From: Ylistrum balloti
Taxonomy: Eukaryota
Reading direction: 5' to 3'
NCBI RefSeq assembly: GCF_031769215.1
Contig: NW_026782190.1
Coordinates: 1,736,001-1,800,000, forward strand
Length of the DNA stretch: 64,000 bases
Each line of letters begins with the position of its first letter. Position 1 is the first letter of the stretch. Made by a program: the position numbers and the translations under genes. This document shows, in pieces, positions 7,749-57,013 of this stretch. Under the pieces are notes generated by a model, which did not search any database, had not been told where the DNA came from, and worked only from the letters and a program-made list of their open reading frames with translations.

Positions 7749-7822
7749 GTCTTCTATCACCATATGTAGTCGTCGTTATAATGTCTTTCTTCACTATGAG
7801 TTATTCTCGTAATGATGTCTCC
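7749..7822. repeat. Orphan 34-bp monomer plus a degenerate progenitor-like unit beyond the LINE fragment
   Basis: GTCTTCTATCACCATATGTAGTCGTCGTTATAATGTC continues the monomer cut at 7193; a more diverged unit ending ATGTCTCC follows. Confidence 0.8.
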
Positions 7823-12190: not shown

Positions 12191-12217
12191 GAAGCTGAAC
12201 CTGCTTGATGCTCGATA
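12191..12217 (+). repeat. Left target-site duplication (27 bp)
   Basis: GAAGCTGAACCTGCTTGATGCTCGATA, identical to 14358-14384. Confidence 0.95.
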
Positions 12218-24394: not shown

Positions 24395-24550
24395 ACAAAT
24401 CCCAACACAGCATCAACAAACAGGAATTAAACCCCAACACAGCATCAACACAAATGAATTAAACCCCGACACAGCATCAACACACAGGAATTAAGCCTCA
24501 ACACAACATCAAAACAAAGGAATTAAACCCCAACACAGTATCAACAGACA
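24395..24550. repeat. 32-bp AC-rich minisatellite, ~5 copies
   Basis: CCCCAACACAGCATCAACACACAGGAATTAAA variants. Confidence 0.9.
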
Positions 24551-24552
24551 GA

Positions 24553-27404: not shown

Positions 27405-27915
27405 AGCAACATCAACAAACAGTAAGTAAACCCCAACACAGCATCAACACAAAGGAATTAAACCACAACACAGGAATTAAACCCCAACACAACATCAACA
27501 CACAGGATTTAAACCCCAACACAACATCAACACACAGAAATTAAACCCCAACACAGCATCAACACACAGGAATTAAACCCCAACACAACATCAACACACA
27601 GGAATTAAACCCCAACACAGCATCAACACACAGGAATTAAACCCCAACACAGCATCAACACACAGGAATTAAACCCCAACACAGCATCAACACACAGGAA
27701 TTAAACCCCAACACAGCATCAACACACAGGAATTACACCCCAACAAAACATCAACACACAGGAATTAAACCCCAACACAGCATCAACACACAGGAATTAA
27801 ACCCCAACACAGCATCAACACACAAAGGAATTAAATTCCAACACAGCATCAACAGATATGAATTAAAGCCAACAAAGCACCAACACCCAGGAATTAAACC
27901 CCAACACAGCATTAA
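27405..27915. repeat. 32-bp AC-rich minisatellite, ~16 copies
   Basis: Period 32 (27601 to 27633). Confidence 0.97.
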
Positions 27916-28399
27916 CACACATGATTTGAATTCTACGCAGCGTCAATACACCTAATTTAAATTCTACGCAACATGCATGACGAAATCCCATAGAGCGGCT
28001 GGGACAAAATACACGAAAATATTACATTTTTAGCAGCAGTAATGCATTATTGTAAATATGTTTGTGTAAGTAAACGTAATCTTACATGCATGTCATGATC
28101 AGCTCACACTTGGACCCATTGTCAAAAGGAACGCAGTTTCTAAATAAAGATTTGTGGGTCTTCAATGTGACAAATCATTACAAAATGTCGAAGAATAAGC
28201 ATTTTTACAAAACATCTCCCTATTTCTGCCGTAAGTTCGTTCGCATTTCTAATATTTACATGAATGACAAATTAAAACGAAGCAAATACAATTTCATTTT
28301 CATCAAGGTTTAGTTCTATTGAAGTAATCACCATTAATGTTGCTTTTCAATATTGTGCTGCTGAAAAAAACACCACCTTTCCATTTCATCGTTTTCTAG

Positions 28400-30911
28400 C
28401 CAGCACAAGTCTTAAACACACTGATACAGGCTACCCAGCACAGGTCCTATACACACTGATAGAGACTACCCAGCACACGTCCTATACACACTGATACAGA
28501 CTACCCAGCACAGATCCTATACACACCGACACAGACTACCCAGCACAGGTCCTATACACACCGATACAGACTACCCAGCACACGTCCTATACACACTGAT
28601 ACAGACTACCCAGCACAGATCCTATACACACCAATACAGACTACCCAGCACACGTCCTATACACACTGATACAGACTATCCAGCACACGCCCTTTACACA
28701 CCGACACAGACTACACAGCACAGGTCTTATACACACTGATACAGACTACCCAGCACAGGTCCTTACACAACGATACTGACTACCGAGCACACGTCTTATA
28801 CACACCGATACAAACCACCCAATACACGTCTTCTACACATCGATACAAATTACCCAGCACAGGTCCTATACACACTGATACAGGCTACCCAGCACAGGTC
28901 CTATACACACTGATAGAGACTACCCAGCACACGTCCTATACACACTGATACAGACTACCCAGCACAGATCCTATACACACCGACACAGACTACCCAGCAC
29001 AGGTCCTATACACACCGATACAGACTACCCAGCACACGTCCTATACACACTGATACAGACTACCCAGCACAGATCCTATACACACCAATACAGACTACCC
29101 AGCACACGTCCTATACACACTGATACAGACTACCCAGCACAGATCCTATACACACCGATACAGACTATCCAGCACACGCCCTTTACACACCGACACAGAC
29201 TACACAGCACAGGTCTTATACACACTGATACAGACTACCCAGCACAGGTCCTTACACACCGATACTGACTACCGAGCATACGTCTTATACACACCGATAC
29301 AGACCACCCAGCACACGTCTTCTACACATCGATACAAATTACCCAGCACAGGTCCTATACACACTTATACAGACTACCCAGCACAGGTCCTATACACAAT
29401 GATACAGACTACCCAGCACAGGTCATATACACACCGATACAGACTACACAGCACAGGTCCTATACACACTTATACAGACTACCCAGCACACGTCCTATAC
29501 ACACCAATACAGACTACCCAGCACAGGTCCTATTCACATCGATACAGACTACACAGCACAGGTCCTATACACACTGATACAGACTACCCAGCACAGGTCC
29601 TATACACACTGATACAGACTACCCAGCACAGGTCCTATACACACTGATACAGACTACCCAGCACAGGTCCTATACACACTGATACAGACTACCCAGCACA
29701 GGTCCTATACACACCGATACAGACTACCGAGCATACGTCTTATACACACCGATACAGACTACCCAGCACAGGTCCTATACACACTGATACAGACTACAAA
29801 GCACACGTCCTATACACAATGATACAGACTACCAAATACAGGTCCTATACACAATGATACAGACTACTCAGCACCCGTCCTATACACAGCGATACAGACT
29901 ACCCAGCACAGGTCCTATACACACTGATACAGACTACACAGCACACGTCCTATTCACATCGATACAGACTACCCAGCACAGGTCCTATACACACTGATAC
30001 AGACTACAAAGCACACGTCCTATACACAATGATACAGACTACACAACACACGTCCTATTCACATCGATACAGACTACCCAGCACAGGTCCTATACACACT
30101 GATACAGACTACAAAGCACACGTCCTATACACAATGATACAGACTACCAAATACAGGTCCTATACACAATGATACAGACTACTCAGCACAGGTCCTATAC
30201 ACACCGATACAGACTACCCAGCACACGTCCTATACACAGCGATACAGACTACCCAGCACAGGTCCTATACACACTGATACAGACTACCCAGCACAGGTCC
30301 TATACACAATGATACAGACTACCCAGCACAGGTCCTATACACACTGATACAGACTACCCAGCACAGGTCCTATACACACCGATACAGACTACCCAGCACA
30401 GGTCCTATACACACTGATACAGACTACCCAGCACAGGTCCTATATACACTGATACAGACTACCCAGCACAGGTCCTATACACACCGATACAGACTACCCA
30501 GCACACGTCCTATACACAGCGATACAGACTACCCAGCACAGGTCCTATACACACTGATACAGACTACCCAGTACAGGTCCTATATACACTGATACAGACT
30601 ACACAGCACACGTCCTATTCACATCGATACAGACTACCCAGTACAGGTCCTATATACACTGATACAGACTATCCAGCACAGGTCCTATACACACCGAAAC
30701 AGACTACACAGCACACGTCCTATTCACATCGATACAGACTACCCAGTACAGGTCCTATATACACTGATACAGACTATCCAGCACAGGTCCTATACACACC
30801 GAAACAGACTACACAGCACACGTCCTATTCACATCGATACAGACTACCCAGCACAGGTCGTATACACACTGATACAGACTACCCAGCGTAGGTCCTTACA
30901 CACCGATACAG
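28400..30911. repeat. 35-bp minisatellite, ~72 copies (AGACTACCCAGCACAGGTCCTATACACACTGATAC)
   Basis: Period 35 (29581 to 29616). Confidence 0.99.
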
Positions 30912-32398: not shown

Positions 32399-35300
32399 TC
32401 ACACAATATTGCTGAAGGTGGACAGGGCTAACATCGTAACAGCGTATGTGTACGGCTCTGAGGACCAGAACGGAAAGTATCTATTCTGATTGTTAAATCC
32501 AGGGAAGTCGATAGGAGATCTCATTGTAGCCTCTTCTTGTTTGTACCAGGTTTCATTCGGAACCCCTTGCATTCCTCGGATGGTAGCAGAATGGTAATGA
32601 TGATCTGGAAGAACCTTGGTCCCATTGAAATATTCATGCCGATTCGCTGGATACTCTGACCAAGACGTCTAAGAAACGGAAGAAAAATAAAAGATAATAT
32701 GCTATTTATTTACACATATTTATTTTAATCCAACTTCAGTGAAGATCTAGGATCCTTGTTATGAAATATTCACTTAAAATGAAGAAAAAACAGTGAATAA
32801 TGCATGTAAAAGGTATGACTGATTACATATACATCATGCCTCAATAGATGAAAATTTATTTTATTTCAAACGATGAGAAAAAAATTGTCCTGAACCTTCC
32901 TTTCAAAACTCCATGGTACTATAACAAAAAACGACAACGCCCATCATATTATAGTATCAGTTTTAAGGGATTTTTTTTATTTCTTTATATATGTTGATGA
33001 TACAGTTGATACTGTAATTAAGTGAGATAATATTTTTTCTGGTGATACACCCTGAAGTGAAATTATTGTAAAAAATAACAATATTGAAATAGCTGTAAAA
33101 CACAATAACAAAATAACAACATTGAAAAAGCTGTAACAAATAATAACAATATAGAAATATTCTGACATACACACTAGAACAAATACAATTATATTAATAG
33201 TCTACACCACTTACCCCTGATCCTTTGACGGAGCCAGAAAAGAAAGCATTCCAAGGTTTATACTCTCCAGACAATATGTACGTATCCAGGAACTTCACAG
33301 CACGTGTTACGACGTCTTTAACCTCTTTTGGCGTAGCTGAAAAGAAACTTTATGATATGAAGAGAGTACCTAGTTGCAACAATGTTCCATTACATACCCA
33401 TAAATGATGTTAATTTATTTGGAAAACGGTATTAATTATTACTTTGTAGCCAGATTACTCAGTAACTTGTATGTCTGATTACGATAACTAAGGTGTGTGA
33501 CGTCAGTAACCAACGACGTTAATTTCAACAATGACATTGCAAAGGTCATGAGACGTGATAAAGGAACACTGATTATCACCACTTCATGTATTTGAATCTC
33601 GCTTTTAATTATATTATGTTATGTTTTGTGTAACAAAGCATTTATAAGTCTGACTATCTTTGTAGTGTACATTCATCGACTAATTACCTTGATATCTAAT
33701 GAAAACATAAAGAATAGGACAGTTTACCATGTACCAGAATGATGAAATTGTTGATTTCAGTTATAAAGTTTTGAACTCGGCCTTTCTTAATTGTTAAAAC
33801 CTGCTTAAAATTAAAATATTAAAACTAATCTGATAATCAGTGTCACTGACGTAATGTTTTGAGATATGACTCAAATAATGATGGACGAAAGTACAGTAGC
33901 GGGCTATCATCGTGGTAAGTAAGTTTAAGGTTTAATTATATAGATAAATGTCTGTCTGTGTTTAAATTACAATGAAGAACTTTCATGCCCGGATTCAAAC
34001 AGGGAATACCGTCTTTGACTTAACTGTGTGAGTGTTTGCACCTATAGATACACCACATATATAATATCAGTGGAACGATCTGGACTACCAATGTATCGTA
34101 GATGTTAAAATGTTATAAAACGAAACTTAAGATATTCAACTTTGTCGTCTAATGCTCCTCAGCACCTCAGCCACTTAAACTCACTCTGGTTCCAGATCAA
34201 TGTTCCTGATTTTTCCTCAAAAGATGTCCAGATTGTTATGAGTGCATTCGCGGCCATTGCTGTTGTAAACAAGCGGTCCTCGCCGTATTTCTGTGAAGGA
34301 AGATTATATATAATACAGAAAATGTAGATTTATCGAAGAGAGGAATGGATTTTAACGACAATTGTAACAAAAGTCAATTTAACGTTAAAACGTTACTGTA
34401 AATATAGGGTAGCTACATGACAGCACTAAAGTAACCCATATAGTTTACAAGGATTTAAAACATTTCCAAATAACTTTATGCATCCTCCAAGAATGATGTG
34501 AATGAATATGGTCAACCGTATGATGACTTTTAATGCATTTTGCAAACATATTTATACATAGTCATAATGGTGACACACATGAAAAATGCAGTATGGCATT
34601 ATTCATATAAGATGGGGAAAACAGTACAAGATTTGTTAGAAATATGTAAATGTATAATCATCATTGATGAAAAGCATGAGTAGGTGTTGTCAAACTCCGC
34701 CACTAAACCAAAATGTGAAGTATCGTACCCACACAGTTTTAAAGAATTTAGACTATTTCCAAATAGTTTTATCAAATACAGTCGGCACTGACCAACAGAA
34801 GTTGCCGTTGTCAGTATAATCATATCGTTGTCCAATTTTGGCAGGAAAATTATCTATAACCGATGGTTTCTTCTTGACGAAGAAAACAAGAAAGTTGATA
34901 TGGTTGTCAATTTACATTTAGATCGTTCAAGAGAGATTCGGCCGTTTGATTGGTCCTTGGCGCTTCTATAGATATATGTGTGCCACGTTTAAATTCACAG
35001 GAATAGTGAACACGGTTCAGAAAATACACAGGTACTTGACCCTATTCTAAAATTATCTGGTGTATGGAAATTACGAAATTAATACGACTATGGGGCTGCT
35101 GCACCTCCCCGTCTAGATTTTGACTTTCCTTTTGATCATTTTGTATTTTCTTTAGTCGCCTCCTAGGCTTCAAATTCTAGGCCCTTAGCACTACTGACGA
35201 GTCCTAGAAGGATGCTACTGTATCTCGCTCTAAATTATGAAAAGGTGTTATTCACTTGTGTGTCTTTGTACAATCACATAGAAGAGTGCTTTATAATGTA

Positions 35301-38300
35301 GTTTCTTGATTGAAATATTTATAGGACAAAGCTCAGACAATACTATCCATACTATATCTTTTTATGTCATCCTTATGAAATTGCTTTTCTGAACGTTTTG
35401 AGAGGCAATTGTGAGAGACTTCGTTGGGTTATGTCAACCTTTTAACAATCGTCAAAATTGATTGTCAATACGAATACAATTTGGGTGACATAGAATTAAA
35501 ATAGCGTGGTCTCTTTTATCCCAGTGCAGCATACATCTGATAACACAACTATCGCTTGAATGCCGATTTTTCCATCACATTTTGTTGGACAGAAGTTATG
35601 GTATTCATTGACTCCAGTCTGATGTGTATTTTCGATAGAACGTCAGAAAAATTTGGATTATTTTTCCCCACAGTTGTAGTCAAATGGACAATAAATACAA
35701 TCTGAAGATTACTAAGAAGTTATATATAGCAATGTACGAAATGGTGTTTACTTGTACATCTATTTATAGGAAATGTTTCCCGCAAATAACTTCTTTCTGA
35801 ATGATTGACGTTAAGCTACAAAGAATGCTTACTTATGCGGATTGCATTGCGTTTAAATAACGTAGATCAACATGACGCCAGACTGACGTCATAGTATTGC
35901 CTGTTGATTTAGAACGTATCTACACAACCTTAAATAGAATACGGATTAAATGTTAGTTAACTGGAAGCCATGATGCAAAATCAATTTTCAGTCTTAATGT
36001 GTATGTTTTAAATAACCTAGTAATGTACAAACCACTGGTTTGCCGTCAGCGTCGATATCCCCATCTCCGAGAAAATCATCATAATACACCATATCAGTTC
36101 CTTGTGGTATAGCTTCCTTAAGCATTATTGTTGTAGCGTTGTTTCTCAGTACGTCTCCGAGAATATCCATCGCCGCTTTCATTGTCTGTAAAACGAAAGG
36201 AAATAAATGTCATATCGAATTTGATAATACACCAGTACATTTGTAAGTGTTGGAAATGATGACGTTGAAAGAAATCTTGATTATCTAAAACTTTTTGAAA
36301 CTATTCATAGGGTCACATATATATAGTGATAATGTCCTTATTTCAAACTTGTTAGTGTGCCTTAGGCCTCCCATAAGTTGCATAAGAACTTAAATATCAT
36401 GTAATTGTTTGCCTATAAACTGTTGAATCCAATATTCTAAACTGCCTTTTCCCTATAAAAATTGAATTCATGCATATTTTCACGGGAAAGCAAACGTCAT
36501 TATATCTTAGCATTGATGACTTCCAAGGAAACACTCCTTAAAATATTCACTGATAATTAATTATAGATATTTACGTGATGACAAAGACCATTACAGATAT
36601 TTAGATGATAGTGAAGACCGTTATAGGTATTTAAATGATAGAGGAGACCGTTATAGATATTTAAATGATAGTGAAGACCGTTAGAGATATTTAAATGATT
36701 GTGAAGACCGTTACAGATATTTAAATGATAGTGAAGACCGTTATAGATATTTAAATGATAGTGAAAATCGTTAGAGATATTTAAATGATAGTGAAGATCG
36801 TTATAGACATTTAAATGATAGTGAAGATAGTTAAAGATATTTAAATGAATGTGAAGCCCGTTATACATATTTAAATGATAGTGAAGCCCGTTATACATAT
36901 TTAAATAATAGTGAAGACCGTTATAGGTATTTAAATGATAGAGGAGACCGTTATAGATATTTAAATGATAGTGAAGATCGATATAGACATTTAAATGATA
37001 GTGAAAACCGTTATAGATATTTAAATGAATGTGAAGACCGTTATATATATTTTCCTGTTGATGAAGACTGTTACAGATACTCACGTGGTGAGGAAGACCA
37101 TTATATGTGTATCGTCTTTGAAGCTGACTGTATGTTCTGGCCACGAACCAATAAAACTCTATAGCTGATGGATAGTAGGTCAGTGCTAGGTCAGGACGGC
37201 TAGAGAAGTTGGTGTTGATCTGAAAGGCTATCATCGATGTCGTGTTCAGGTAGATTTGCTAGAAGTTTGAAGAAAACAAAACAAATTCTGAATATCGTGC
37301 GTTTCATTAATTGAAAACAACATGTCCTTCTCTCGAGTATACCACCGCTGGACAAGTTTGTGTTGCTAGATATGTCAGGAAGGGGTTATTTCATTTAACA
37401 CCCTTGCGCTCATACGAAATCTAACAAAATTCCATTCAAATGAAAGTGTAACATCCTTACAGTATTTGTTGGTGTCATGAAAGGTGACATAAATGAAAAT
37501 TATCAATAACATAAACTTAGATTGCTATTATTTCAACATATTCAATTGTGACACGTATTTTTCATGACATGTCACCTGCATTTCCGGGTCCTCCAGGACC
37601 TCCGCCGTGACAAGACCCGTAAGTATACTGTTGGTGATACCGAATAAGGCGTTGGCCGCTACGGTTATGTCAACGTTGTTTACGTTACCCGGGGTAACCA
37701 CGCCCGTGTAGTATTGGGTCTTTATATCCTCCAGATCTTGTACCTGAAGTTAGTATACAAATAAATCTCATCTTCAACGTTCAAAGTACAATAAAAGCAA
37801 CAATGTACATCTTTTTTATTGTTCTTTGGCAATTCTGATTACATCAAATTATAAATGGAATAATATCTTGGAGAAATATCTCCCCATATATATTGCGAGG
37901 TGTTATCTGATATCATAACTCAGATCACAACTGCTAAGATTTATCACATTAAGTGATACAAAGTAATCAACCGCTAGAAGTAAGCTGCTGTAAGTTCAAA
38001 AGTGTGGCGTCTCGAAAACTTCGAAAATTGACACACCAGAAAGGGCCCCGCAATGAGTTATGTTCAAACTTTTAGAAGGGCACATAGATTAAGACGTAAT
38101 GATTATATACTTCGAATGAAAACAATATTTCATAAACCAAAATATCATTAACCTTGATGGGAAATTACATACATGTGAATTGGTATCCAAATTATGTGAA
38201 CTGGTTGTGACAAATTTAGCTTTACACAAACGTATTTCCATTACAGTAATAGTAACATTGCCTGTCGACCTCAGGATCTTTCTTCGAGGAAGCACTGGAT

Positions 38301-41300
38301 AGCGTGCAATTGGCCCTTCAGAATTTTGCGATAAAACCAAAATAAAAGAGACAAATAGATGGACAAACTGATTACAATATGGCAGACGTTTTGGAAAGAT
38401 AATGAAAACGGAATACCCATGTTGTTACTAAAGCTACGTCTTCATTTTTTGACTTTGCAAGTTCTAGGAATCTACGCATGTAGACGTAAGTCCTCGTGTC
38501 TATAGTATCCACCCGCTTGTTTCCTGACAGAGGTCGGTAGGCATAGTGTTTGATAGCGCTGAATACGGATGACAGATTTGTGTTCCGGGACTGCCACAAT
38601 GCATTGGATTGTGGGAAATCTACAATAGCTTCCTTCAACAATGACCCCAGGCCAAGATTCACAGACGTATCATCAAAATCTGGAGGTATCCGGAATACGC
38701 TTTCGTAAATAGATCTGAAAAAGATTTTTTGTGTAATATCATATCGTCCATCATGATTCACCAATACGATATTATATTTGAGTTCGATGTCAAAATGAAA
38801 TGTAGCATTGTAAGTAAATAAAGCTCTGGATAACCAAATATGCGTGTTATCTATATCTGGAAAATGGCATGGCAAAAAAGCAAACTAAGACACCTCATCA
38901 TTTCATTTCCCCAAATAATACAAAATACAATATTTTTCGCCAAATTTAGTTTCGATTATGTCTATCACATAACCAGTCGGTAGAAGTAGTATGCATTTTT
39001 TTATTGTGGTTAAACGTGAAACATACAGAAAGGTAGTCATCAACAGAAAAAGGGTGATTGATCACACGGTTAAGGTTTCGTCATTTATAACTGATCTGAT
39101 TTATGTTTAGTGAAATTCATTACATAAATTGTGTAAAACACCTCGCGTAAATGTGACTGCTGGAAAATCACATTGTTTCAATTATAAACTTCTCACTAAA
39201 GAGATATGGAGTGAGAACATCGCCCATTTAGACATTTTTTTTAATTAATAAATGATGGAATATTATTTGGTTATCAGAAACATTCATTTCCATTTCATAT
39301 GAGTTTTATTTACTAGCTAGTCATAGAGTTTTCTACTTTTCCAAGACTCTTTATAAATAAAGGTTAAAGGATTGTGTTTTACTGGTTCTAGTGTTTGTGC
39401 ATAGCACTTCAAATTAATAACAATCTTCCTATCCTCGCCGTCCCTACAGGTGTAGTGTCACCTTATCCTGACACAGGAACGAAGTATACTATAATCAACA
39501 CATTTTTTCGCGAGTATGGTTAATTTTTTATTCAATCCCAACTCTTTTATATCGAAAATTATAATCTGTTAAACAAACATTACAAAAATCTTTGTCAATT
39601 GCCTCGGACGTCTAAGCTCATAATGGTAGTTTTACCTTGTTAAACTTTGAAAATGTAACCATTTATCATTTTATGACGTCATTACACGTCATTTTCACTT
39701 ATCGAAGTTTAATACCTCAGTGTTTAGTCTACTTTAGTAAAAATGTGTCGTAACTAAAGGTAATAGTATGTAAGTATAAGTATACTTAGTGGCGAGAAGT
39801 CCCTTCATGATGTCCACTACGTCCTTTAGTCCAATCTTCTCCATCTCCTCATATACTGCATTCCAGTTGACAAGATCAGTGGCGTTAAACATTGAGAGCA
39901 AGTTGATTGGAGTGCTGACCCAGCCCTAAATGAAAACCAAAAGCACTAAAAAGTGGTGGGAGTGCGGACCAAGCCCTGGATGATAAACAAAAACACCAAA
40001 AGCTGGTGGGAGTGCTGATCAAGCCCTAGATGATAAACAAAAACACCAAAACTTGGTGGGAGTGCTGACCAAGCTCTCAAGAAAAAAACCCAACTGTAAG
40101 TCGATGTGATTGCTGACCTCACTTTTCATGAGAAACAAAAACACTAAAAGTTATAAGAAGTGTTGATCCAAAGATTTATTTTCTGCGTCTATCGTCTAGT
40201 TGCTCATGATATCTTAACTGTACGATGAGATTTCTCTGTAATCTAAGAAATCATATACCTGCATTGTATAATCTTCATTGGCAGCTTACCAACCCCAATG
40301 TGTGATTTGTTAATATTTACGTAAGGCTTGTGTAAGTATATACTGCCTTATCGTTACTTACACAGGTTGTGAATGTACGATGTTTGCTTACATCTCTTAA
40401 TCTAAAGTTTTAAATGTAAGAAAACTAGATTTAATGTAACATTTTATATGCATTTACAAATAATTATAAAATATGGATTTAATTTTGTGCTTTTGTAAAT
40501 ATTTTGTTGTAGTTATATCAACAATATAACAATTCAAATGAATTCCCCGCTGTTCTACGGAGATAATAAAACAATTCATTTTTAATTTTTGGTTTTTGGT
40601 TTTTTTGTTTTTTTTTTTTAAATGTATCGCTATCAAATGGAAATTTATTTATTATGCCCCTCGAATTTTTGGGGATGCACATAGTCGCCACCTTTCCCGT
40701 CTATTGTCCTTTTCGTGTCCGGAGTATAATTTTGTCAACAGTTATTCATCAGTTACGCCGACATAATACCTTTCTTAAAATTTCGTTTCCGGAGCTTATC
40801 TTTACATGCATTTGAACTAGGATCGTGAAACTTTGTACACACATTGGTCATATTAAGACAAGATGTGTTTACCAAAGTCAGGGCCTGCAATCCTTTAATT
40901 ACAGAGTTATCGCCCTTTGATAAAATGTTGTGTCCGTAGCATAACGGTGCTCACATTTAAACTAGAATAATGAAGTTATATTATATAAAATAGATGATAT
41001 GATCACACTGAATGCAATTTGCACTTAATATCATATCTCAAGCAGATGTATTTGGTATTTAAACCGTTGGTACATTAGATATTACGAATGTAGCCACAGT
41101 GACTTACCTTGTATTTTTCGTCATACTCCTGAGGCCAAAATGCCATGATTGAGTTAGTATAGTTTGTGTTTTTGTCGTTGTGATTGTCCATTAAAATATC
41201 AATCGACATACTGATTTGCTCCTCGGAAGGCTTCGGTGCTTTTCCATATCGATAAGCTTCCATGAGGCACGATGTTATCCAGGCAGTTGCAAACATGTTA

Positions 41301-41554
41301 TTATCAAATACTTTAAACTCATAACGGAGGGCGCTCATGTCAGGGTTTCCATGAAAATACTGTCGAACATCGCTTTCATAAATTCCGCGAAATTTCCCCC
41401 AGAAAAATGGCGGTATTGAGGGCACCGTCCGTTGTACCTGCATCAGCTTTATTCTTTTGAATAGTGCTTCGACCGTTTCCTCCACGTCTCCATAAGTAGG
41501 ACTAATAACGGTAAAACATCCTAACACGATTAATGATAATGTGATTCCCTCCAT
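32399..41554 (-). CDS. Uncharacterised secreted protein, 625 aa, with PDxDDT (class II terpene-cyclase-like) motif, copy A; exons 41554-41108, 39925-39786, 38714-38417, 37743-37576, 37258-37085, 36185-36033, 34290-34185, 33336-33215, 32668-32399
   Basis: All eight introns GT-AG with consistent phases (0,2,0,0,0,0,1,0); uninterrupted frame; signal peptide MEGITLSLIVLGCFTVISPTYG. The gene structure is high confidence; the function is inference. Confidence 0.9.
35188..35215 (+). ncRNA. Deleted remnant of a minimal hammerhead ribozyme
   Basis: GCACTA CTGACGA GTCC TAGAA GGA, then loss of CGAAACAGCTG relative to 48161-48204. Confidence 0.65.
36560..37084. repeat. 30-bp intronic minisatellite derived from the exon 5 donor region, ~17.5 copies
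   Basis: Minus-strand unit ATCTATAACGGTCTTCACTATCATTTAAAT, homologous to the exon end ACATATAATGGTCTTCCTCACCACGTGAGT. Confidence 0.95.
39926..40085. repeat. ~47-50-bp minisatellite made of the exon 2 splice-acceptor junction, ~3 extra copies
   Basis: Repeats of (minus strand) TTTTTGTTT.TCAT..AG GGCTTG.TCAGCACTCCC. Confidence 0.9.
40648..41040. mobile_element. Probable non-autonomous Helentron-associated (HINE-like) element with internal ~150-bp repeats
   Basis: Starts TTATTATGCCCC..GGGG..CATAG; internal repeats of GTGTCCGGAG(T/C)ATAA. Family assignment from recall. Confidence 0.4.
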
Positions 41555-41994
41555 GTCTAATGGGCGAAACTAACGACCATCAAACTCTAGACCTATTCCT
41601 CGCAGTGGACCACGTCAGACTTGTAGAATAGGTGTTCTTTATCCGGCACATAAGGTCACAATACTTGTCTGAAAGCCTTATCGCAAACGATTACACATAA
41701 CAAGACATTCAAACCATTGTAAAGTGATTCGTTAGTTGGTTTGTCCTGCTTCCCATTTGTTTCTGTCTTGTCTTGACTTCAAACATTGTCATGTTTTGTG
41801 ATTAGTAAGCTATTTTGTCTTGTTTTCCATTTTTCTTGTCTTGTTTTCTAATATTGTCATGTTTTAAACAATACCAATTTAGCTGCAATGTATCTTTGGA
41901 TTGGAATTTAGGATTGAAAGGCGCAGTTATTTTCTGTGTCTTTTATAGAATATCTTACAAACATGAAGTATGCGATGAGAAGTTATTTATTTGA

Positions 41995-43060
41995 CCAGGT
42001 ATACACACCGATACAGACTACCAGGCAAAGGTTTTATACACACCGATACAGACTACCCAGCACAGGTCCTATCACCGATACAGACTACCCAGCACACGTC
42101 TTAAATACACCGATACAGACTACCCAGCACAGGTCCTATACACACTGATAGAGACTACCCAGCACAGGTCCTATACACACTGATATAGACTACCCTGCAG
42201 AGGTCCTATACACACCGATACAGACTACCCAGCACAAGTCTTATATACACCGATACAGACTTCCCAGCATAGGTCATATACACACCGATATAGACTACCC
42301 AGCACCCGCCCTATACAAACTGATACAGACTATCGAGTACAGGTCTTATACACTTTGATACAGACTACCCAGCACACGACCTATACACACCGATACAGAC
42401 TTCCCAATACAGGTTCTATACACACCGATGCAGACTACACAATACAGGTTCTATACACACCGATGCAGACTACACAATACAGGTTCTATACACAACGATG
42501 CAGACTAACCAGCACAGGTCTTAAACACACCGATACAGATTACCAAGCACAGGTCTGATACACATCGATACACACTCCCAGCACAGGTCCTATACACATC
42601 GATACAGACTACCTAGCACAGGTCTTATAGACACCGATACAGACTATCCAGCATAGGTCTTATACACACGGATACAGTCTACTCAGCACATGTCCTATAC
42701 ACACTGATACAGAATGCACAGCACAGGTCTTGTACACACTGATACAGACTACCCAGCACAGGTGCTATACACACTGATACAGACTACCGAGTACAGGTCT
42801 TATACACACTGATACAGACAACCCAGCGCACGACCTATACACACCGATACAGACTACCCAATACAGGTTCTATACACACCGATGCAGACTAACCAGCACA
42901 GGTCTTAAACACACCGATACACACTCCCAGCACAGGTCCTATACACACCGATACAGACTACCCAGCACACGTCTTATACACACCGATACAGACTACCCAG
43001 CACAGGTCTTATACACACCGATACAGACTACCCAGCACATGCCCTTACACACCGATACAG
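41995..43060. repeat. 35-bp minisatellite, second array (~30 more diverged copies)
   Basis: Same monomer as 28400-30911. Confidence 0.98.
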
Positions 43061-44444
43061 CCACTTAATGTACATCTTCCCTTACACTAATTTGTATTTT
43101 GGATTAAACACATATTTCATGACATTACCTCACAGAAAAAAACAAACTTTAAGTGGCATAGTTATGATACTTTTATTTCATTTAATTTAAGGGAAATCCA
43201 TATAGTAATGTCGCTTCAGCTAGTTCTTGAAAACAATCCACATACAGTGTATGTTGATTTTCATAATTTAAAAACATATTCACTGAATGTCCTGTCAGCC
43301 TTTCCATGATAACATAGATACATTGTAAGTAGATGTCGTTATTTAACCATATTTGGTTTACTTAACTATTCATTATCAGTTAGTCAATCGCCGAGAATGG
43401 AATCCATCCCGTTGTCATCGCCGACACCGATATGGAAAAACAATAGCCATTGATCGCATTATCCAGACATTACGCAGTCCTTAACTTTTTTACAATGGAG
43501 TTCATGATATATTAAAATTTGGGAGCAAAGGTACAAGTTGTTGTACAGATGTACTGGGACTCTGAACAGAATGTTATGATGGGTAGAGTATTTGACAATC
43601 ACATGAGAGTATACAATGCATGTTTCATGTGAAAAATACATGTATGTAAAAGTATCAAGTTTTTGTTTTGATATTAATGAAATATGAATTTTAATCTATA
43701 AATGACTAACCTTATCTTTGTATTCAGGTTATGAGAGAGCGTTTTCTTGTCCGAAGAGGACTCAGATATACCTCAGAAATAGACTGTCGACGAAAAAATC
43801 TCATTAGAATATCTTAAGACGGCCAGGATTTGGGAAACATTAATTTTGTTTATTGCACAGACCAATATGCCACATTTAGACGAAAAAAGATTGACTTCAA
43901 ATGATTGTAGACATAAATAAAATGTAGCATTTCTTACAATAGCTAGTATATAAAATTATATTGTTACGAACTGCGAACCGAATAGTCGTGAGCCTGGAAT
44001 TTAAATGTGTACCTAGGTCGATAGGCTGAGTTTTATACAATTATAACATATAACATATTATTGAGTCAGGGGAACTAACTCCTGTGAACATTATACATAT
44101 CTTAGGACATAGGGAGAATACATTTCTATATTATATTATTTTAATGTAGATCAGTGGATCCATTTCAATCATAAAAATAAGTCATTTCTCTTGTAATTTT
44201 GAAATGTTTGTTTCAGTTTGTGAATATTTCTTTTTATAATTTGGTAGTTGTAACATGTTTGTAATGTCATTATATGTTCTTAATATGTTAAGACAATGAA
44301 ACAATTCGTATATAACGTACAATCCAAGCCAATCTTCAATATATCATAGAAACTCATAAATATCCATAGAAGAAGTTTTTTTGTGTTTTTATTTTATACC
44401 GTTACAAAAGAAACGTAGATATATGTGATGATAATTAACATGGT

Positions 44445-47400
44445 TCACACAATATTGCTGAAGGTGGACAGGGCTAACATCGTAACAGCGTATGTGTATG
44501 GCTCTGAGGACCAGAACGGAAAGTATCTATCCTGATGGTTAAATCCAGGGAAGTCGATAGGTGATCTCATTGTAGCCTCTTCTTCATTGTACCAGGTTTC
44601 ATTCGGAACCCCTTGCATTCCTCGGATGGTAGCAGAATGGTAATGATGATTTGGAAGAACCTTGGTCCCATTGAAATATTCATGCCGATTCGCTGGATAC
44701 TCTGACCAAGACGTCTAAGAAAACGGAAAAATTAAAAGAAAATATATTATTAATTTATACATATTTGTTTAATCCAACTTCATTTAAGATCTAGGATCCT
44801 TGTTATGAAATATTCGCTTAAAATGAAAAAAGTGAATGCGTGTAAAAGGTATGAATGATTACATATACATCATAGAGATAAACTATCAATCATTGCCTCA
44901 ATAGATCGAATACGCCTTATTTCAAACGATGAGAAAAAATTGTCCTGAACCCTCCTTTCAAAATTCCATGGTACTGCAATAAACAATATGACCACACCCA
45001 TCATATTCTAGTATCAGTTTTAAGGGATTTTTTTTTATTTCTTTATATATGTTAATGGTACAGTTGATATTGCAATTAAGTGAGATGATAATTTTTCTGG
45101 TGATACATCCTTAAGTGAAATTATTATGAAAAATAATTTAATGATAAAATATAATATATAAATATAATAATAAAGATAATTTTGAAATAGATGTGATAAA
45201 TAATAACAAAATATCAAAATTTCAGAAAATCCTTTTAAGTATTTCGGGTTAGACACTGCAATTGGTTTTAACCCTTCAAACACTGTATTAATGACATAAT
45301 TAGGACAAAAGATGTATTAAACCCAGACTTATTTTTCAATAATCAAGATACACTAAAGAGAGTGAATGGTAAATTATGTATATATCAGAAAGCTTTTAAA
45401 AAGTTCCCTGTATTGAAATAATTAAAAACCTAGTCTCAAGAAAAACGCCTTTAAAATATATATTTCATATACTCTATACTAGAATCATACCAGGATTTCT
45501 TTTTTTCAATGAAATTTATTCAATCGAATATTTTCTAGTATATCTCTCCACCAAATTCTATGACAAGTAATATATAAGCGAGATGTTTCCATTTCCCTCT
45601 TTTGGATTTTCCATTTCATATTGATAATAATCTTGTGCGTGTTCACATTTACCATTCCTTACAATATCCAAACGGTTAGACACTATTTCTACGAGACGTA
45701 GGTAGATGAAGACGTAAGAGTAGTTTAAAGGCTGCAACGTAACGCTGAACATTCCTGCAGTGCAAAAATTGGTTTTGCCTTTCGTCAGTATAATCTGATT
45801 GAAAGTTGTGTCCTGCTTTGGGATTCGACAGTTTATTTCAGTATGGTAACACTATAAATTCGGCATCACTTCCGCACTGTCACAAGAAGGGTCTCATGAA
45901 CACATCGTAGCAGAAATGCAGGTACTCAACACATAAACATAAATACTTAGGGAAGGAGGCCATCTTTAAAACGATTCTATCTGTTGATATCAAACCAAAT
46001 CACAAACACCCATTTTTCTGTTGTATCACTAATTTTTACCGTGTTCTTATTCAGGAACGTTATACTATTTAGAGAAGGACACGTTCAAATAATGTAAATA
46101 TTTCATTTGGTTTTAGCTTGCCTTCATCGATTTTGTTCAGATATTCGTGTTTTTCTCTTCATGAGATCAACACCATTACGCTCATTACTTCTGTTTTAGA
46201 AACCCTTTTTTTTGCCCTTATAACATGAAAAACCTTCAATTGACATGAATTTACTAAAAACTAATGTTGTAGAAATCATATCCGATTTGTTTCGTAACTT
46301 TCAGGGTAAATGTTGACATACACATAGACTCTAGAACAAATACAATTATATAAATTGTCTACATCATTTACCCCTGATCCTTTGACGGAGCCAGAAAAGA
46401 AAGCATTCCAAGGTTTATACTCTCCAGACAATATGTACGTATCCAGGAACTTCGCAGCACGTGTTACGACGTCTTTAACCTCTTTTGGCGTAGCTGAAAA
46501 GAAACTTTACGATATGAAGAGAGTACCTAGTTGCAACAATGTTCCATTACATACCCATAAATGATGTTAATTTATTTGGAAAACGGTATTAATTATTACT
46601 TTGTAGCCAGATTACTCAGTAACTTGTATGTCTGATTACGATAACTAAGGTGTGTGACGTCAGTAACCAACGACGTTAATTTCAACAATGACATTGCAAA
46701 GGTCATGAGACGTGATAAAGGAACACTGATTATCACCACTTCATGTATTTGAATCTCGCTTTTAATTATATTATGTTATGTTTTGTGTAACAAAGCATTT
46801 ATAAGTCTGACTATCTTTGTAGTGTACATTCATCGACTAATTACCTTGATATCTAATGAAAACATAAAGAATAGGACAGTTTACCATGTACCAGAATGAT
46901 GAAATTGTTGATTTCAGTTATCAAGTTTTGAACTCGGCCTTTCTTAATTGTTAAAACCTGCTTAAAATTAAAATATTAAAACTAATCTGATAATCAGTGT
47001 CACTGACGTAATGTTTTGAGATATGACTCAAATAAAAATGGACGAAAGTATAGTAGCGGGATATCATCGTTGTAGGTAAATTATGTCTGTCTGCGTTTAA
47101 ATTACAATGAAGAACTTTCATGCTCAGTTTCAAACAAGGAATACCGTCTTTGACTAAACTGCGGGAGTGTTTGCACCTATAGATACACCACATATATAAT
47201 AGCAGTGGAACAATCTGGACTACCAATGTATCGTAGACGTTAAAATGTTTGAACCAAATTATAAAACGAAACTATGTTCCTCTGGGCCTATTATATAGCT
47301 AAGAAGCAAGTTTTCAGATAGGATCGACACTTCAACTCACTTTGGTTCCAGATCAGTGTTCCTGATTTTTCCTCAAAAGATGTCCAGATTGTTATGAGTG

Positions 47401-50400
47401 CATTCGCGGCCATTGCTGTTGTAAACAAGCGGTCCTCGCCGTATTTCTGTGAAGGAAGATTATATATAATACAGAAAATGTAGATTTAACGAAGAAAAGA
47501 ATGGATTTTAACGACAATTGTAACAAAAGTCATTTTAACGTTAAAACGTTACTGTAAATATAGGGTAGCTACATGACAGCACTAAAGTAACCATATAGTT
47601 TACAAGGATTTAAAACATTTCCAAATAACTTTATTCATCCACCAAGAATGATGTGAATGAATATGGTCAACCGTATGATGACTTTTAATGCATTTTGCAA
47701 ACATATTTATACATAGTCATAATGGTGACACACATGAAAAATGCAGTATGGCATTATTCGACAAATATATCACTGGCGTTGTCAGTATAATCATATCGTT
47801 GTCCAATTTTGGCAGGAAAATTATCTATAACCAATGGTTTTTATGTTTACGAAGAAAACAATGAAGTTGATATTGTTGTCAATTCACATTTAGATCGTTC
47901 AAGAGATATTCGGCCTTTTGCTTGGTCCTCGGCGTTTCTATATATACATATGTTTGCCACGTTTAAATTCACAGTAATAGCGACACGATTCAGAAAATAC
48001 ACAGGTACTTGACCCTATTCTAAAATTATCTGGTGTATGGAAATTACGAAATTAATCCGTTTATGGGGCTACTGCACCTCCCCGTCTAGATTTCGACTTT
48101 CCTTTTGATCACTTTCAATTTTCCTCAGTCGTCTCCTAGGCTTCAAATTATAGGCCCTTAGCATTACTGACGAGTCCTAGAAGGACGAAACAGCTGAATG
48201 ATGCACTAAAATTCATTGTTTGACTCTATTGTATCTCACTCTTATTATGAAAAGGTGCTATTCACTTGTGTGTCTTTTGTACAATCACATAGTAGAGTGC
48301 TTTGTAATGTAGTTTCTCGATTGAGATATTTATAGGTCAATACTATCTATACTATACCTTTTAAATCATCCGGATGAAATTGCTTTTCGGAACGTTTTGA
48401 GAGGCAATTGTGAGTGACGTTGTTGGGTTATGTCAACCATTTAACAATCGTCAAAATTGATTGTCAATACGGATGCGATTTGGGTGACTTTGAATTAAAA
48501 TAACGTGATTTTTTTTATCCAAGTGCAGCATGCATCTGATAACACAATTATCGTTTGAATGCCACTTTTTTCATCACATTTTGTAGGACAGCAGTTAGGG
48601 CATTCATTGACTCCAGTCCGATATGTATTCTCGATAGAAAAAAATTTGGATTATTTTTCCCCAACGGTCTTGGTCATATGGACAATAAATACAATCTGAC
48701 GATTACGCAGTAGTTATATTCAGCAATGTGTATACGTAATGGTGTTTACTTGTACATCTATTTATAGGAATTGTTTCCAGAAAATCACTACTTTCTGAAT
48801 GATTGACGTTAAGCTACCATGAATTCTTAATCGGATTGCATTGCGGATTGACGCCATATTTTGTATGTTGATTTAGAACGTATATACACAACCTTAAATA
48901 GAATACGGGTAAAACGTTAGTTAACTTGATGCAAAATCATATTTCCGTCTTACTCTGTATGTTTTAAATAACCTAGTAATATACAAACCACTGGTTTGCC
49001 TTCAGCGTCGGTATCCCCATCTCCGAGAAAATCATCATAATACACCATATCGGTTCCTTGTGGTATAGCTTCCTTAAGCATTATTGTTGTAGCGTTGTTT
49101 CTCAGTACGTCTCCAAGAATATCCATCGCCGCTTTCATTGTCTGTACAACGAAAGGCAATAAATGTCATATCGTATTTGATAATACACCAGTACATTTCT
49201 AAATGTTGGAATTGATGACGTTACAAGAAATCTGGATTATCTAAAACGTTTTTTAAACTTTTCATATGGCCACATAGATGTCGTGATAATGTCCTTATTT
49301 CAAACCAGTTAGTGTGCCAAAAGCCTCCCATAAGTTGCATAAGAGGTTAGATAATTAAGTAATTGTTTCGCCATAAACTGTTGAACCAATATTCTACATT
49401 TCCCTACAAAAATTCGTGCATATTCTCAAGGGACAGGGATTTCCAGGAAAACACTCTCTTTAAAATATTCACTGATAATTAATTATACATATTTAAATAA
49501 TAGTGAAGACCGTTATAGGTATTTAAATGATAGAGGAGACCGTTATAGATATTTAAATGATAGTGAAAACCGTTATAGATATTTAAATGAATGTGAAGAC
49601 CGTTATATATATTTTCCTGTTGATGAAGACTGTTACAGATACTCACGTGGTGAGGAAGACCATTATATGTGTATCGTCTTTGAAGCTGGCTGTATGTCCT
49701 GGCCACGAACCAATAAAACTCTATAGCTGATGGATAGTAGGTCAGTGCTAGGTCAGGACGGCTAGAGAAATTGGTGTTGATCTGAAAGGCTATCATCGAT
49801 GTCGTGTTCAGGTAGATTTGCTAGAAGTTTGAAGAAAACAAAACAAATTCAGCATATCATGCGTTTCATTAATTGAAAAGCAGCATGTCCTTCCCTCGAG
49901 TATACCATCGCTGGACAAGGTTATGTTGCTAAATCTGTCAGGAAGGTGTTATTTCATTATACACTCTTGTGCTCATACCAAATCTAACAAAATATATTGA
50001 CTTTTATATGACCATTCTTTTCAAATGAAAGTGTAACATCCTTAAATTATTTGCTGGTGTCATTAAAGGTGACAAAAATGAAAATATTCAATAACATAAA
50101 CTTAGATTACTATTATTTCAACATATTCAATTATGACACGTATTTGCCATGAAATGTCACCTGCATATCCGGGTCCTCCAGGACCTCCGCCGTGACAAGA
50201 CCCGTCAGTATACTGTTGGTGATACCGAATAAGGCGTTGGCTGCTACGGTTATGTCAACGTTGTTTACGTTACCCGGGGTAACCACGCCCGTGTAGTATT
50301 GGGTCTTTATATCCTCCAGATCTTGTACCTGTAGTTAATATATAAATCAATCTCTTCAAAGTTCTTAACTCAGATCACAACTGCTAAGATTTATCATATT

Positions 50401-53400
50401 AAGTGATACGAAATAATGTTATCAGCCGCTAGAAGTAAGCTGCTGTAAGCTCATAAGTTTTGCGTCTCGCAAACTTCGAAAATTGACACACCAGAAAGGG
50501 CCCTACAATGAGTTATGTTCAAACTTTTAGTTTAACAAGACTGGCACAAAGATTACGACATAATGATTTTATGCTTCGAATGAAAAAGATATTTGATAAA
50601 TCAAAATATCATATACCTTTTTGGAAAATAAAACATATATGTGAATTGATATCAAAATTATGTGAACTGGTTGTGACAAATTTATCTTTACACAAACTTA
50701 TTTCCATTACAGTAATAGTAGCATTGTCTGTCGACCTCTGGAACTTTCTTCAATGAAGCATTGGATGGTATCCAATTGGCCCTTCAGAATTTTGCGATAA
50801 AAACAAAATAAAAGAGACGGATAGATGGACAAACTGATTACACTATGGCAGACATTTTGGAAAGATAATGAAAACGGAATACCCATGTTGTTACTAAAGC
50901 TACGTCTTCATTTTTTGACTTTGCGAGTTCTAGGAATCTACGCATGTAGACGTAAGTCCTCGTGTCTATAGTATCCACTCGTTTGTTCCCTGACAGAGGT
51001 CGGTAGGCATAGTGTTTGATAGCGCTGAATACGGATGACAGATTTGTGTTCCGGGACTGCCACAATGCATTGGATTGTGGGAAATCTACAATAGCTTCCT
51101 TCAACAATGACCCCAGGCCAAGGTTCACAGACGTATCATCAAAATCTGGAGGTATCCGGAATACGTATTCGTAACCAGATCTGAAAAGGATTTTTTGTGT
51201 AATATATCGTCTATCATGATTCACCAATACGATATTATATTTGAGTTCTATCTTGAAATGAAACGTAGCCTTGCAAGTAAATAAAGACACATCTTCCTTT
51301 AATTTCCTCAAATAATACTAAATGACAATATTTTCGCCGAATTTAGTTTCGATAATGTCAATCAAATAACCAGTAGGCAGCAGTGTTTTCTATTTATTAT
51401 TGCGACTAAACGTGAAACATACAGAAAGTTATTCATCAACGGGATGCTGGACCAACCGGTTAAAGTTTGGTGATATATAACTGCTCTGATTTAAGTTTAA
51501 TGAAAGTCATTACATAAATTAGTAAAACACCTAGCGTAAATGTGACTGCTGGAAAATCACATTGTTTCAATTATGAACTTGTTGCTAAAGAGATATGGAG
51601 TGAGAGCGTCGTCCATTTAGATATCATGTTTATTAATAAATGATGGAAAAATTATCGAAATAATTCGGTTATCAGAAACATTTATTACATTTTATTTACT
51701 AACTAGTCAAAGAATTTCCTACTTTTCCAAGACTATTTATAAATCAACTCCAAAGTAAATGATTGTTTTTATTGGTTTCTAGTTTATGCATAGCACATAA
51801 AATCAATAATTATCATCCTATCCCCGTCCCTCCAGGAGTATGGTCACCTTATCCTGACACAGGAATCAATTATACTATAATCAACACATTTTTGTTTTTC
51901 CGCTGTTATGGTAAAACAAACATTACAAAAAACTTGGTCAATTTCTTCGGACGTCTCAGATAATTTTACCTTGTTAAACTTTGAAAATGTAACAATTTAT
52001 GATGTTATGACGTCATTATCACGTCATTTTCTCTAATCCAAATTCAATGCCTCAGTGTGTGTAAATAATTTGGATCACGTCATTTTCACTTATCGAAGTT
52101 TAATACATCAGTGTTTGGATCTACTCTAGTAAAAAGATGTTGTAACTAAAGGTAATAGTATGTAAGTATAAGTATACTTAGTGGCGAGAAGTCTCTTCAT
52201 GATGTCCACTACGTCCTTTAGTCCAATTTTCTCCATTTCCTCATATACTGCATTCCAGTTGACAAGATCAGTGGCGTTAAACATTGAGAGCAAGTTGATT
52301 GGAGTGCTGACCCAGCCCTAAATGAAAAACAAAAAGTACTACAAATTGTTGGATGTGCTGACCGAACCATAAAGGATGAACAAAAACACTACAAATAGTT
52401 GGGAGTGCTGACCCAGCCCTAAATGAAAAACAAAAACACTCAATGTTGGTGGGAGTGGTGACCAAGCCCTTAATGAAAACCAAAAGCAATATAAATGGTT
52501 GGGAGCACGGACCAAGCCCTTGATGATAAACAAAAACACCAAAAGCTGATGGGAGTGCTGACCAAGCACTCAAGAAAAAAAACCCACTTTAAGTCGATGT
52601 GATTGCTGACCTCACTTTTCATGAGAAACAAAAACACTAAAAAAGTTATAAGAAGTGTTGATCCAAAGTTTTATTTCATGTGTCTATCGTTTAACTCCTC
52701 ATGATACCTTGACTGTACGATGATATTTCTCTGTAATCTAAGAAATCATATACCTGCATTGTATAATCTTGATTGGAAGCTTATCAACCCCAGTGTGTGG
52801 TTTGTTAATATTTACGTCAGGCTTGTGTAAGTATATACTACCTTATCATTACTTACATCGGGTGTAAATGCGCGATGTTTGCTTAGGTTTAAATGTAAGA
52901 AAATTAGATGTAATGTAACATTTTATATGCATTTGCAAATAGTAATAAAGATATGGATTTGATTTTGTGCTTTTGTAAATATTTTGTTGTAGTTGTATTA
53001 ACAATATAACAATTCAAATAAATTCCCCGCTGTTCTACGGAGATAATAAAACAATTCATTTTTTTATCGTTATCGAATGGAAATATAAGAATTTGTTATC
53101 TATTATGCTCGGCTAATTTTTGGGGTTGCACATAGTCGCCACCTTTCCCGTCTATTGTCCTTTTCGTGTCCGGAGCATAACTTTGCCAACAGTTATGTAA
53201 GAATCGTGTAACTTGGTGCATTCATTAGTTACGCCGACATGATACGCCGTGTACTAAAATCAAGGCCCACAACCCCTTTTTTAAATATCCTTTCTTAAAA
53301 TTTCTTGTCCGAAGCTTATCTTTACATGCATTTAAACTAGGGTCGGGAAACCTTGTGCACACATTGGTCATATTAAGACAAGATGTGTGTACGAAAGTCA

Positions 53401-54084
53401 GGGCCTGCAATCCTTTAATTACAGAGTTATCGCCCTTTGATAAAATGTTGTGTCCGGAGCATAACGTTGCTCGCATTTAACGTAGGTTAATGAAAGTATA
53501 TTATACAAAATAGATGACATGATTAAAAAGTATCATACTGAATGTAATTTGCACTTAATATCATATCTCAATCAGACGTATTTGGTATGTAAACCATTGG
53601 TACATTAGATCTTACGAATGTAGCCACAGTGACTTACCTTGTATTTTTCCTCATACTCCTGAGGCCAAAATGCCATGATTGAGTTAGTATAGTTTGTGTT
53701 TTTGTCGTTGTGATTGTCCATTAAAATATCGATCGACATACTGATTTGCTCCTCGGAAGGCTTCGGTGCTTTTCCATATCGATAAGCTTCCATGAGGCAC
53801 GATGTTATCCAGGCAGTTGCAAACATGTTATTATCAAATACTTTAAACTCATAACGGAGGGCGCTCATGTCAGGATTTCCATGAAAATACTGCCGAACAT
53901 CGCTTTCATAAATTCCGCGAAATTTCCCCCAGAAAAATGGCGGTATTGAGGGCACCGTCCGTTGTACCTGCATCAGCTTTATTCTTTTGAATAGTGCTTC
54001 GACCGTTTCCTCTACGTCTCCATAAGTAGGACTAATAACGGTAAAACATCCTAACACGAATAATGATAATGTGATTCTCTCCAT
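44445..54084 (-). CDS. Uncharacterised secreted protein, 625 aa, with PDxDDT motif, copy B; exons 54084-53638, 52317-52178, 51180-50883, 50328-50161, 49820-49647, 49141-48989, 47446-47341, 46493-46372, 44714-44445
   Basis: Exon lengths identical to copy A; frame intact; only scattered substitutions (MERITLSLFV, SGYEYV, EDPDMQ, GDTDAEG, RAAK, NHQDRY). Confidence 0.9.
48161..48204 (+). ncRNA. Minimal type I hammerhead ribozyme (cleavage triplet mutated) in a Penelope-like/retrozyme-type repeat
   Basis: Stem I GCATTA/TGATGC, CTGACGA, stem II GTCC-TAGAA-GGAC, GAAA, palindromic stem III CAGCTG, then AA where canonical UH is expected. Confidence 0.8.
49480..49646. repeat. 30-bp donor-derived minisatellite, copy B (~5.5 units)
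   Basis: Shortened version of 36560-37084. Confidence 0.93.
52318..52575. repeat. Acceptor-derived ~47-51-bp minisatellite, copy B (~5 extra units)
   Basis: Includes a near-perfect duplicate acceptor TTTTCATTTAG|GGCTGGGTCAGCACTCC at 52419-52420. Confidence 0.92.
53100..53550. mobile_element. Duplicate of the HINE-like element in intron 1 of copy B
   Basis: Homologous to 40648-41040. Confidence 0.4.

Positions 54085-56067: not shown

Positions 56068-57013
<946 letters not shown>

Follow-up and report, generated by a model that had tools for sequence, protein, structure and literature searches.

Introduction

Oxidosqualene cyclase (OSC) is, to our knowledge, the only class II terpene cyclase known in animals, and for many drimane, labdane and meroterpenoid skeletons of animals we know of no enzyme. 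OSC carries the D-C-T form of the acidic motif. Class II cyclases use the middle aspartate of this motif, which is strictly conserved, as general acid, and drimenol synthases have the form DxDT (PMC12232559); in the single-domain cyclase MstE, water is kept out by a capping loop (PMC12414744). The word 'metazoa' is absent from the text of a survey of class II cyclase diversity published in 2025 (PMC12414744). In this study, we analysed a 64,000-nucleotide stretch of the Ylistrum balloti genome (contig NW_026782190.1, positions 1,736,001 to 1,800,000; "the window"), which holds on its minus strand, at 32399–54084, one gene twice in collinear copies (A and B). Its product is predicted to fold like the beta domain of class II cyclases and to carry an invariant aspartate where these enzymes keep their general acid. 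The original prediction for this locus, made from the letters of the DNA, had seen a duplicated, secreted protein with a cyclase-like DxDD motif and, possibly, an unrecognised animal cyclase family.

Predicted fold and position of the acidic motif

The fold was predicted by AlphaFold2 with an alignment of 131 sequences on P0037, a homolog from Haliotis that is 45% identical to the window protein, and the resulting model (predicted local distance difference test score, pLDDT, 94.8; predicted template modelling score 0.94) is mostly helical. Foldseek against the PDB returned only alpha/alpha-toroid proteins, with the small "squalene-hopene cyclase" 8pak in first place. A wide search of 48,161 chains by VIA-align, independent of Foldseek, placed nine class II terpene cyclases at ranks 1–9: drimenol synthase 9mhs (Z 24.8), the small "squalene-hopene cyclase (SHC)" 8paj (24.0), MstE 6sbb (23.6), SHC 1gsz (23.3), the Actinoplanes protein 6ij1 (23.2), ent-copalyl diphosphate synthase (ent-CPS) 5bp8 (22.6), Tpn2 7xkx (22.2), human OSC 1w6k (22.0) and Rv3377c 6vpt (21.0). 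Next came a glycoside hydrolase of family 88 (GH88, 20.9), the cyclase SsDMS (20.7) and GH105 (20.4), all others scoring 19 or less. The alignments span the model from residue ~22 to ~634 with only about 300–350 residues aligned (318 of 347 in MstE, 319 of 619 in SHC), and therefore the model is not a beta-gamma didomain but a single barrel into which about 300 residues are inserted. Six inner helices, recognised from the DSSP string together with the conservation pattern, start at D85, D208, N317, Y379, D469 and W613, and the strongest conservation appears to lie at their N-termini, where barrel enzymes keep the active site. The predicted fold is an (alpha/alpha)6 barrel of the beta-domain type of class II terpene cyclases, which is the alpha-barrel that the original prediction had inferred and proposed to check by AlphaFold and Foldseek.

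The motif was located with a second model that begins at residue 205, three residues before D208 (alignment A4, pLDDT 95.4), and with which the VIA-align search was repeated. Of the two structural searches with this model, Foldseek did not discriminate between families, while VIA-align had the cyclases on top, at a root-mean-square deviation (rmsd) of 2.7–3.1 Å compared to 3.9–4.6 Å for the GH matches and at identities of up to 15% compared to at most 10%. The alignments start at residue 318 of AsDMS (9mhs), 104 of MstE (6sbb), 371 of SHC (1gsz), 298 of SsDMS (8zg0) and 450 of human OSC (1w6k), so that D210, residue 6 of the model, stands opposite residues 323, 109, 376, 303 and 455, if no gap lies in the first six residues. 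For SHC, this is what we take to be the general acid, D376 of D374-x-D376-D377, and the alignment starts in ent-CPS (308) and Rv3377c (290) are consistent with the acids of these enzymes presumably being D313 and D295. It is likewise the general acid in the four other reference cyclases, namely D323 in AsDMS (PMC12232559), D109 in MstE (titles of 6sbe and 6sbd), D303 in SsDMS (title of 8zg0; PMC12232559) and D455 in OSC (PMC9634032). Five exact coincidences out of five exclude a register accident for the position of D210. The stretch I-P-P-D-F-D-D-T also resembles the SHC consensus Y-P-D-V-D-D-T-A.

Distribution and conservation of the family

An exhaustive HMMER search with exon 1 as query yielded 148 clusters, about 55 of them full-length (600–700 amino acids), and nearly all full-length members start with a hydrophobic segment and carry D-x-D-D-[T/S] around residue 210. 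Three matches (P0111, P0136 and P0143) are TPR or other repeat proteins and were set aside as spurious, as were the labels "Hexamerin" and "Capsid protein" of two UniRef clusters; all other named relatives are labelled "uncharacterized" or "hypothetical". Among animals, the family is present in every major class of molluscs, in the starfish Patiria, amphioxus, the sponge Amphimedon and rotifers, and protist-side members are from Dictyostelium, Phalansterium, Mastigella, Anaeramoeba, Alphamonas, Ancoracysta and Chromosphaera. A handful lie on contigs that we call bacterial (Bacteroidota-like) because the neighbouring genes encode cargo of the type IX secretion system (T9SS) and housekeeping proteins; around P0093 and P0280 these housekeeping or T9SS-cargo genes give no hint of a pathway. 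P0281 lies on a eukaryotic contig. On this metagenome contig (L126), the intron-less P0281 gene (3108–5015) is followed by a gene for 641 amino acids without Pfam match (7600–9525), which may be a tandem paralog. Often there are several paralogs per genome. Longer relatives (P0172, P0151, P0234, P0055 and others) show no recognisable fused domain. The spread over animals, diverse protists and a few bacteria means that the family is neither animal-specific nor recent. Consequently, the animal family envisaged by the original prediction has to be widened: the phylogenetic distribution that it had proposed to look at is broad, from molluscs and other invertebrates to phagotrophic protists and a few bacterial contigs.

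The alignment of 131 sequences has a mean column identity of 25%. R78, D85, F89, D208, D210, Y255, D268, R270, T294, Y379, Y380 and G453 never vary in it, about 60 further positions are at least 90% conserved, and both window copies retain every one of these residues. Among the 72 highly conserved residues, 18 are aromatic and many others Asp, Asn or Arg. The original prediction hinged on conservation of the aspartates in homologs: the first and the middle one are kept in 188 of 188 motif occurrences among the fetched relatives, and at the third position D alternates with C or T (DxDDT 147, DxDDS 34, DxDTS 4 and DxDCT 3, the last in Elysia and Dictyostelium). The motif goes beyond chance, since the Asp pair is invariant at such low column identity. 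Replacement of the third aspartate by Cys (D-T-D-C-T) or Thr (D-Q-D-T-S) occurs in otherwise full-length proteins, P0031/P0276 of Elysia crispata, P0107 of Dictyostelium dimigraforme and P0040 from a metagenome, and this variation of the motif resembles the variants of OSC and drimenol synthases.

The same conservation bears on two further explanations. The protein could be another acid-base enzyme on the same scaffold, such as an isomerase or epimerase like AGE/YihS, a hydratase-dehydratase like the periplasmic linalool dehydratase-isomerase, or a vinyl-ether lipid hydrolase. Such families score clearly below the cyclases, and the catalytic His or Cys that we take them to use has no counterpart here, as no His or Cys is invariant in the alignment; we regard this explanation as unlikely. 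It could also be a non-catalytic secreted binder on an alpha/alpha toroid, comparable to the thioester-containing (TED) domain of complement and alpha-2-macroglobulin or to transcobalamin. However, the protein lacks a thioester motif, its invariant Asp cluster sits exactly where barrel enzymes have their catalytic spot, the N-termini of six inner helices are conserved, and residues are invariant from protists to animals and under constraint between the window copies (see below), which renders a mere binder very unlikely.

Proposed function

In our proposal, the protein is a single-domain enzyme, secreted or lysosomal, whose (alpha/alpha)6 barrel follows the plan of the class II cyclase beta domain. 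D210 of P-D-x-D-D-[T/S], at the start of the fourth barrel helix, would serve as Brønsted acid, aided by D208 and by residue 211 (D, C or T). A lipophilic substrate, probably an isoprenoid, would be bound in the barrel mouth and take up the proton at a C=C bond or epoxide. The ~300 residues of insertions may stand in for a gamma domain or capping loop, and conserved Arg and Lys residues may hold a polar head group of the substrate. Here, we infer catalysis as well as substrate class and compartment, and give class-II-cyclase-like chemistry in a secreted or lysosomal barrel enzyme a probability of roughly 45%. A further-reaching version, which we hold as tentative and rather doubtful, would make this the first extracytoplasmic class II cyclase family, of ancient eukaryotic origin and extending from phagotrophic protists to molluscs, echinoderms, amphioxus, sponges and rotifers. 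Its substrates in the secretory or phagolysosomal route would be isoprenoids from the diet, from prey or from membranes, such as polyprenyl phosphates, squalene, or compounds of the carotenoid or prenyl-quinone type.

A number of observations weigh against cyclase-like chemistry. At the level of sequence, the family is unannotated by every library searched: Pfam gave no match for the exons, for 10 full-length members or for 60 members at E<=10, NCBIfam gave no match to the family, and the PDB gave none with a single sequence and no cyclase in a profile search, which found only insignificant EF-hand-like matches at the DDFLGDGD loop. For direct comparison, 37 SHC-type genes were retrieved from contigs by a DNA pattern for D-V-D-D-T-A, and 16 of them were compared with the family by hhalign; this comparison, confined to SHCs, gave a probability of 0.4% and no sequence similarity. 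The sole stretch aligned pairs the D-D-T-A helix of SHC with the E-D-R-x-F-T-T-A helix of the family and not with the DxDD helix. Homology with SHCs is therefore not shown at sequence level. A gibberellin-operon CPS, sought as reference cyclase sequence, was not found on pNGR234a at 200–350 kb. No paper in the library searched treats the family, cites its accession numbers or describes a class II cyclase of animals apart from OSC. At the level of structure, the Foldseek E-values are weak (best 5.7e-4), with cyclases mixed with GH9, YihS-type isomerases/epimerases, GH76 and complement TED domains; GH88 and GH105 are just 3–4 Z units lower in VIA-align; and the mapping of D210 was read from alignment start residues, not from residue-by-residue superposition. 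In terms of biology, the signal peptide separates the protein from the cytosolic pools of farnesyl diphosphate (FPP), geranylgeranyl diphosphate (GGPP) and squalene. Members are found in phagotrophic protists and in invertebrates with intracellular digestion. This distribution, and the frequent presence of more than one paralog in a genome, suggest that the enzyme serves digestion or the phagolysosome more than a pathway dedicated to natural products. Of the cyclase-like nature inferred by the original prediction, the fold and the position of the motif on the general acid stood up in the models, and the cyclase chemistry is a proposal.

The extracytoplasmic location and the largely polar nature of the conserved residues (Asp, Asn and Arg, as in carbohydrate-active enzymes) make a glycosidase- or hydratase-type enzyme a serious rival, although one that we consider less than probable. 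The protein would then found a new secreted (alpha/alpha)6 carbohydrate-active family with a digestive function. It could be an unsaturated-uronate hydratase like GH88/GH105, whose reaction likewise opens with an Asp protonating a C=C bond, or a glycosidase like GH76 in which the neighbouring D210 and D211 are catalytic. Other barrel families, too, use this position for catalysis: the GH88 and GH105 alignments start six residues before Asp88, which we take to be catalytic, and in the GH76 entry 6shm D136/D137 would fall on D210/D211. A single case, and weak as such, is found in Haliotis rufescens (L128), where a Polysacc_lyase_14 alginate-lyase gene (24332–25780) lies 5 kb downstream of P0152 (10001–19419) in the same orientation. 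However, Pfam matched none of 60 members to Glyco_hydro_88, GH76 or another glycosidase family, and the GH88/GH105 unsaturated uronyl hydrolases and GH76 alpha-mannanases align with lower Z, higher rmsd and lower identity than the cyclases. The GH76-like version is further opposed by the full-length members in which D211 is Cys or Thr, by the invariance of the first Asp of DxDD, which GH76 enzymes, as we understand them, do not need, and by a second GH76 entry, 9r4k (catalytic D163 according to the title of 9r4o), which does not map onto the motif.

The gene pair and its surroundings

Open frames, GT-AG sites and the tblastn matches of full-length relatives (P0037 being collinear for copy A) together defined the spliced models, whose coordinates are collected in Table 1. 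The original prediction of a duplicated gene was confirmed, as both copies are intact and complete, all introns are GT-AG, and the limits 32399–54084 coincide exactly with the stop codon of copy A and the start codon of copy B. In a six-frame scan of this segment a set of nine corresponding open stretches occurs twice, and blastn of one half against the other is collinear at 81–94% similarity including introns. The exons are 97–99% identical without gaps, in contrast to 81–94% for the introns. The copies differ in 39 nucleotides and 15 amino acids, and a ratio of nonsynonymous to synonymous differences (pN/pS) of ~0.17 between them indicates purifying selection on both. Copy B translates residue for residue into P0159, NCBI "uncharacterized protein LOC132552031 [Ylistrum balloti]", and on contig JAUZWB010000274.1 two adjacent genes of 625 amino acids are annotated.

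Table 1. Coordinates of the two gene copies and of their motifs within the window.
Feature	Position	Strand	Remarks
Gene copy A, predicted secreted class-II-cyclase-like barrel protein	32399..41554	-	9 exons, 625 codons + stop
Copy A exon 1, residues 1-149; signal peptide 41554-41489	41108..41554	-	
Copy A exon 2	39786..39925	-	
Copy A exon 3, with DxDDT motif	38417..38714	-	
Copy A D208-F-D210-D211-T212 codons, putative general-acid motif, predicted N-terminus of fourth barrel helix	38666..38680	-	D208/D210 invariant; at the structural position of the class II cyclase general acid
Copy A exon 4, NNVDITV motif (NNVDITVAANALFG) at 37680-37639, predicted N-terminus of third inner helix	37576..37743	-	
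Copy A exon 5, TYYPS motif (TYYPSAIEFYWFVAR) at 37180-37136	37085..37258	-	
Copy A exon 6, DDFLGDGD acidic loop	36033..36185	-	weak EF-hand-like profile matches
Copy A exon 7, EDRLFTTAMA motif (GEDRLFTTAMAANAL) at 34284-34240	34185..34290	-	
Copy A exon 8	33215..33336	-	
Copy A exon 9 including stop codon	32399..32668	-	
Gene copy B, product identical to P0159 (LOC132552031)	44445..54084	-	9 exons, 625 codons + stop
Copy B exon 1	53638..54084	-	
Copy B exon 2	52178..52317	-	
Copy B exon 3, DFDDT codons 51146-51132	50883..51180	-	
Copy B exon 4	50161..50328	-	
Copy B exon 5	49647..49820	-	
Copy B exon 6	48989..49141	-	
Copy B exon 7	47341..47446	-	
Copy B exon 8	46372..46493	-	
Copy B exon 9 including stop codon	44445..44714	-	

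The motif R-I-P-P-D-F-D-D-T-S is present in both copies, its D-F-D-D-T codons lying exactly where the original prediction had placed them, and the minus-strand translation of 38500–38800 contains ESVFRIPPDFDDTSVNLGLGSLL. The three further motifs that had been called invariant across the copies have the same letters in A and B. The protein begins with a typical signal peptide, MEGITLSLIVLGCFTVISPTYG, in agreement with the proposed secretory routing, and has 9 N-glycosylation sequons (N-x-S/T) and no C-terminal anchor; a search for QxxxGxW in the window protein found no QW repeat, as had been noted before. Pecten maximus has a tandem pair, too (L127, 10001–16142 and 17978–24877), with genes of 626 amino acids and nine exons alike. 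Either the duplication is older than the split of Pecten and Ylistrum and the exons have been homogenised, or the gene was duplicated recurrently.

After the exon 5 donor of each copy lies a His/Tyr/Asn-rich minisatellite (minus strand, 36560–37085 in copy A and 49482–49646 in copy B) with units N-I-Y-N-G-L-H-Y-H-L and an open frame; this open stretch amounts to 233 amino acids in copy A and 113 in copy B and is spliced out by the RefSeq model P0159. A second minisatellite, on the plus strand at ~27300–30900 and 41900–43100, is open in several frames (unit ~Y-R-L-P-S-T-G-P-I-H-T-D-T-D-Y-P-A-Q-V-L-Y-T-L-I-Q-T-T-Q-H) and coincides with strong negative GC skew at 28–30 kb and 42–44 kb. As it lies just 3' of each copy, it is part of a duplicated unit of ~12.5 kb. 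Elsewhere in the window, a multi-exon flavoenzyme gene (15979–19656, minus strand) gives Pfam matches to Amino_oxidase (E 6e-7) and to NAD_binding_8 in one exon and has the dinucleotide-binding motif G-A-G-P-S-G in a second exon. Open frames of 166, 173 and 276 amino acids at 12199–14208 (plus strand) look, by their motifs (Y-R-P-I-S-L-L type), like the reverse transcriptase of a retrotransposon without long terminal repeats (non-LTR), and an open frame at 56536–57006 (minus strand) has a long collagen-like (G-P/A-T)n repeat followed by a hydrophobic stretch.

Comparison with known systems

Should the protein act on isoprenoids, it would represent a new enzyme family for the terpenoid chemistry of animals and protists and for biocatalysis, and it would imply that proton-initiated cyclisation can run outside the cytosol; if it is an extracytoplasmic cyclase, animals would possess a second class II cyclase lineage besides OSC. 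Should it turn out to be a glycosidase or hydratase, it would constitute a new carbohydrate-active family whose closest structural relatives are cyclases, which would bear on the kinship of the two barrel superfamilies. With either outcome, a family of many marine invertebrate genomes would gain a testable function.

Compared to SHC and human OSC, which have a gamma domain and QW repeats and are monotopic membrane enzymes, the window protein has neither and appears to be soluble and secreted. The drimenol synthase AsDMS (9mhs) and the drimenyl diphosphate synthase SsDMS (8zg0) are HAD-fused, cytosolic and act on FPP, AsDMS binding the diphosphate by R368, R370, R415 and Y416, whereas the window protein has a signal peptide and no HAD or gamma domain. 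Close in architecture are the monodomain cyclases MstE (6sbb) and the small "SHCs" 8paj and 8pak, which consist of the beta domain only, like the single barrel predicted here. These enzymes are bacterial and comprise ~350 amino acids, in contrast to ~625 with ~300-residue insertions, signal peptide and sequons in a family that is eukaryotic with a few bacterial members, and the sequence identity between them and the window protein is only 12–15%. The motif of MstE is DxD (PMC12414744), that of the window family DxDD[T/S], whose pattern of variation fits the cyclases better than GH88, GH105 or GH76. While homology in sequence was not found, on predicted fold and acid motif the protein is like a monodomain class II cyclase.

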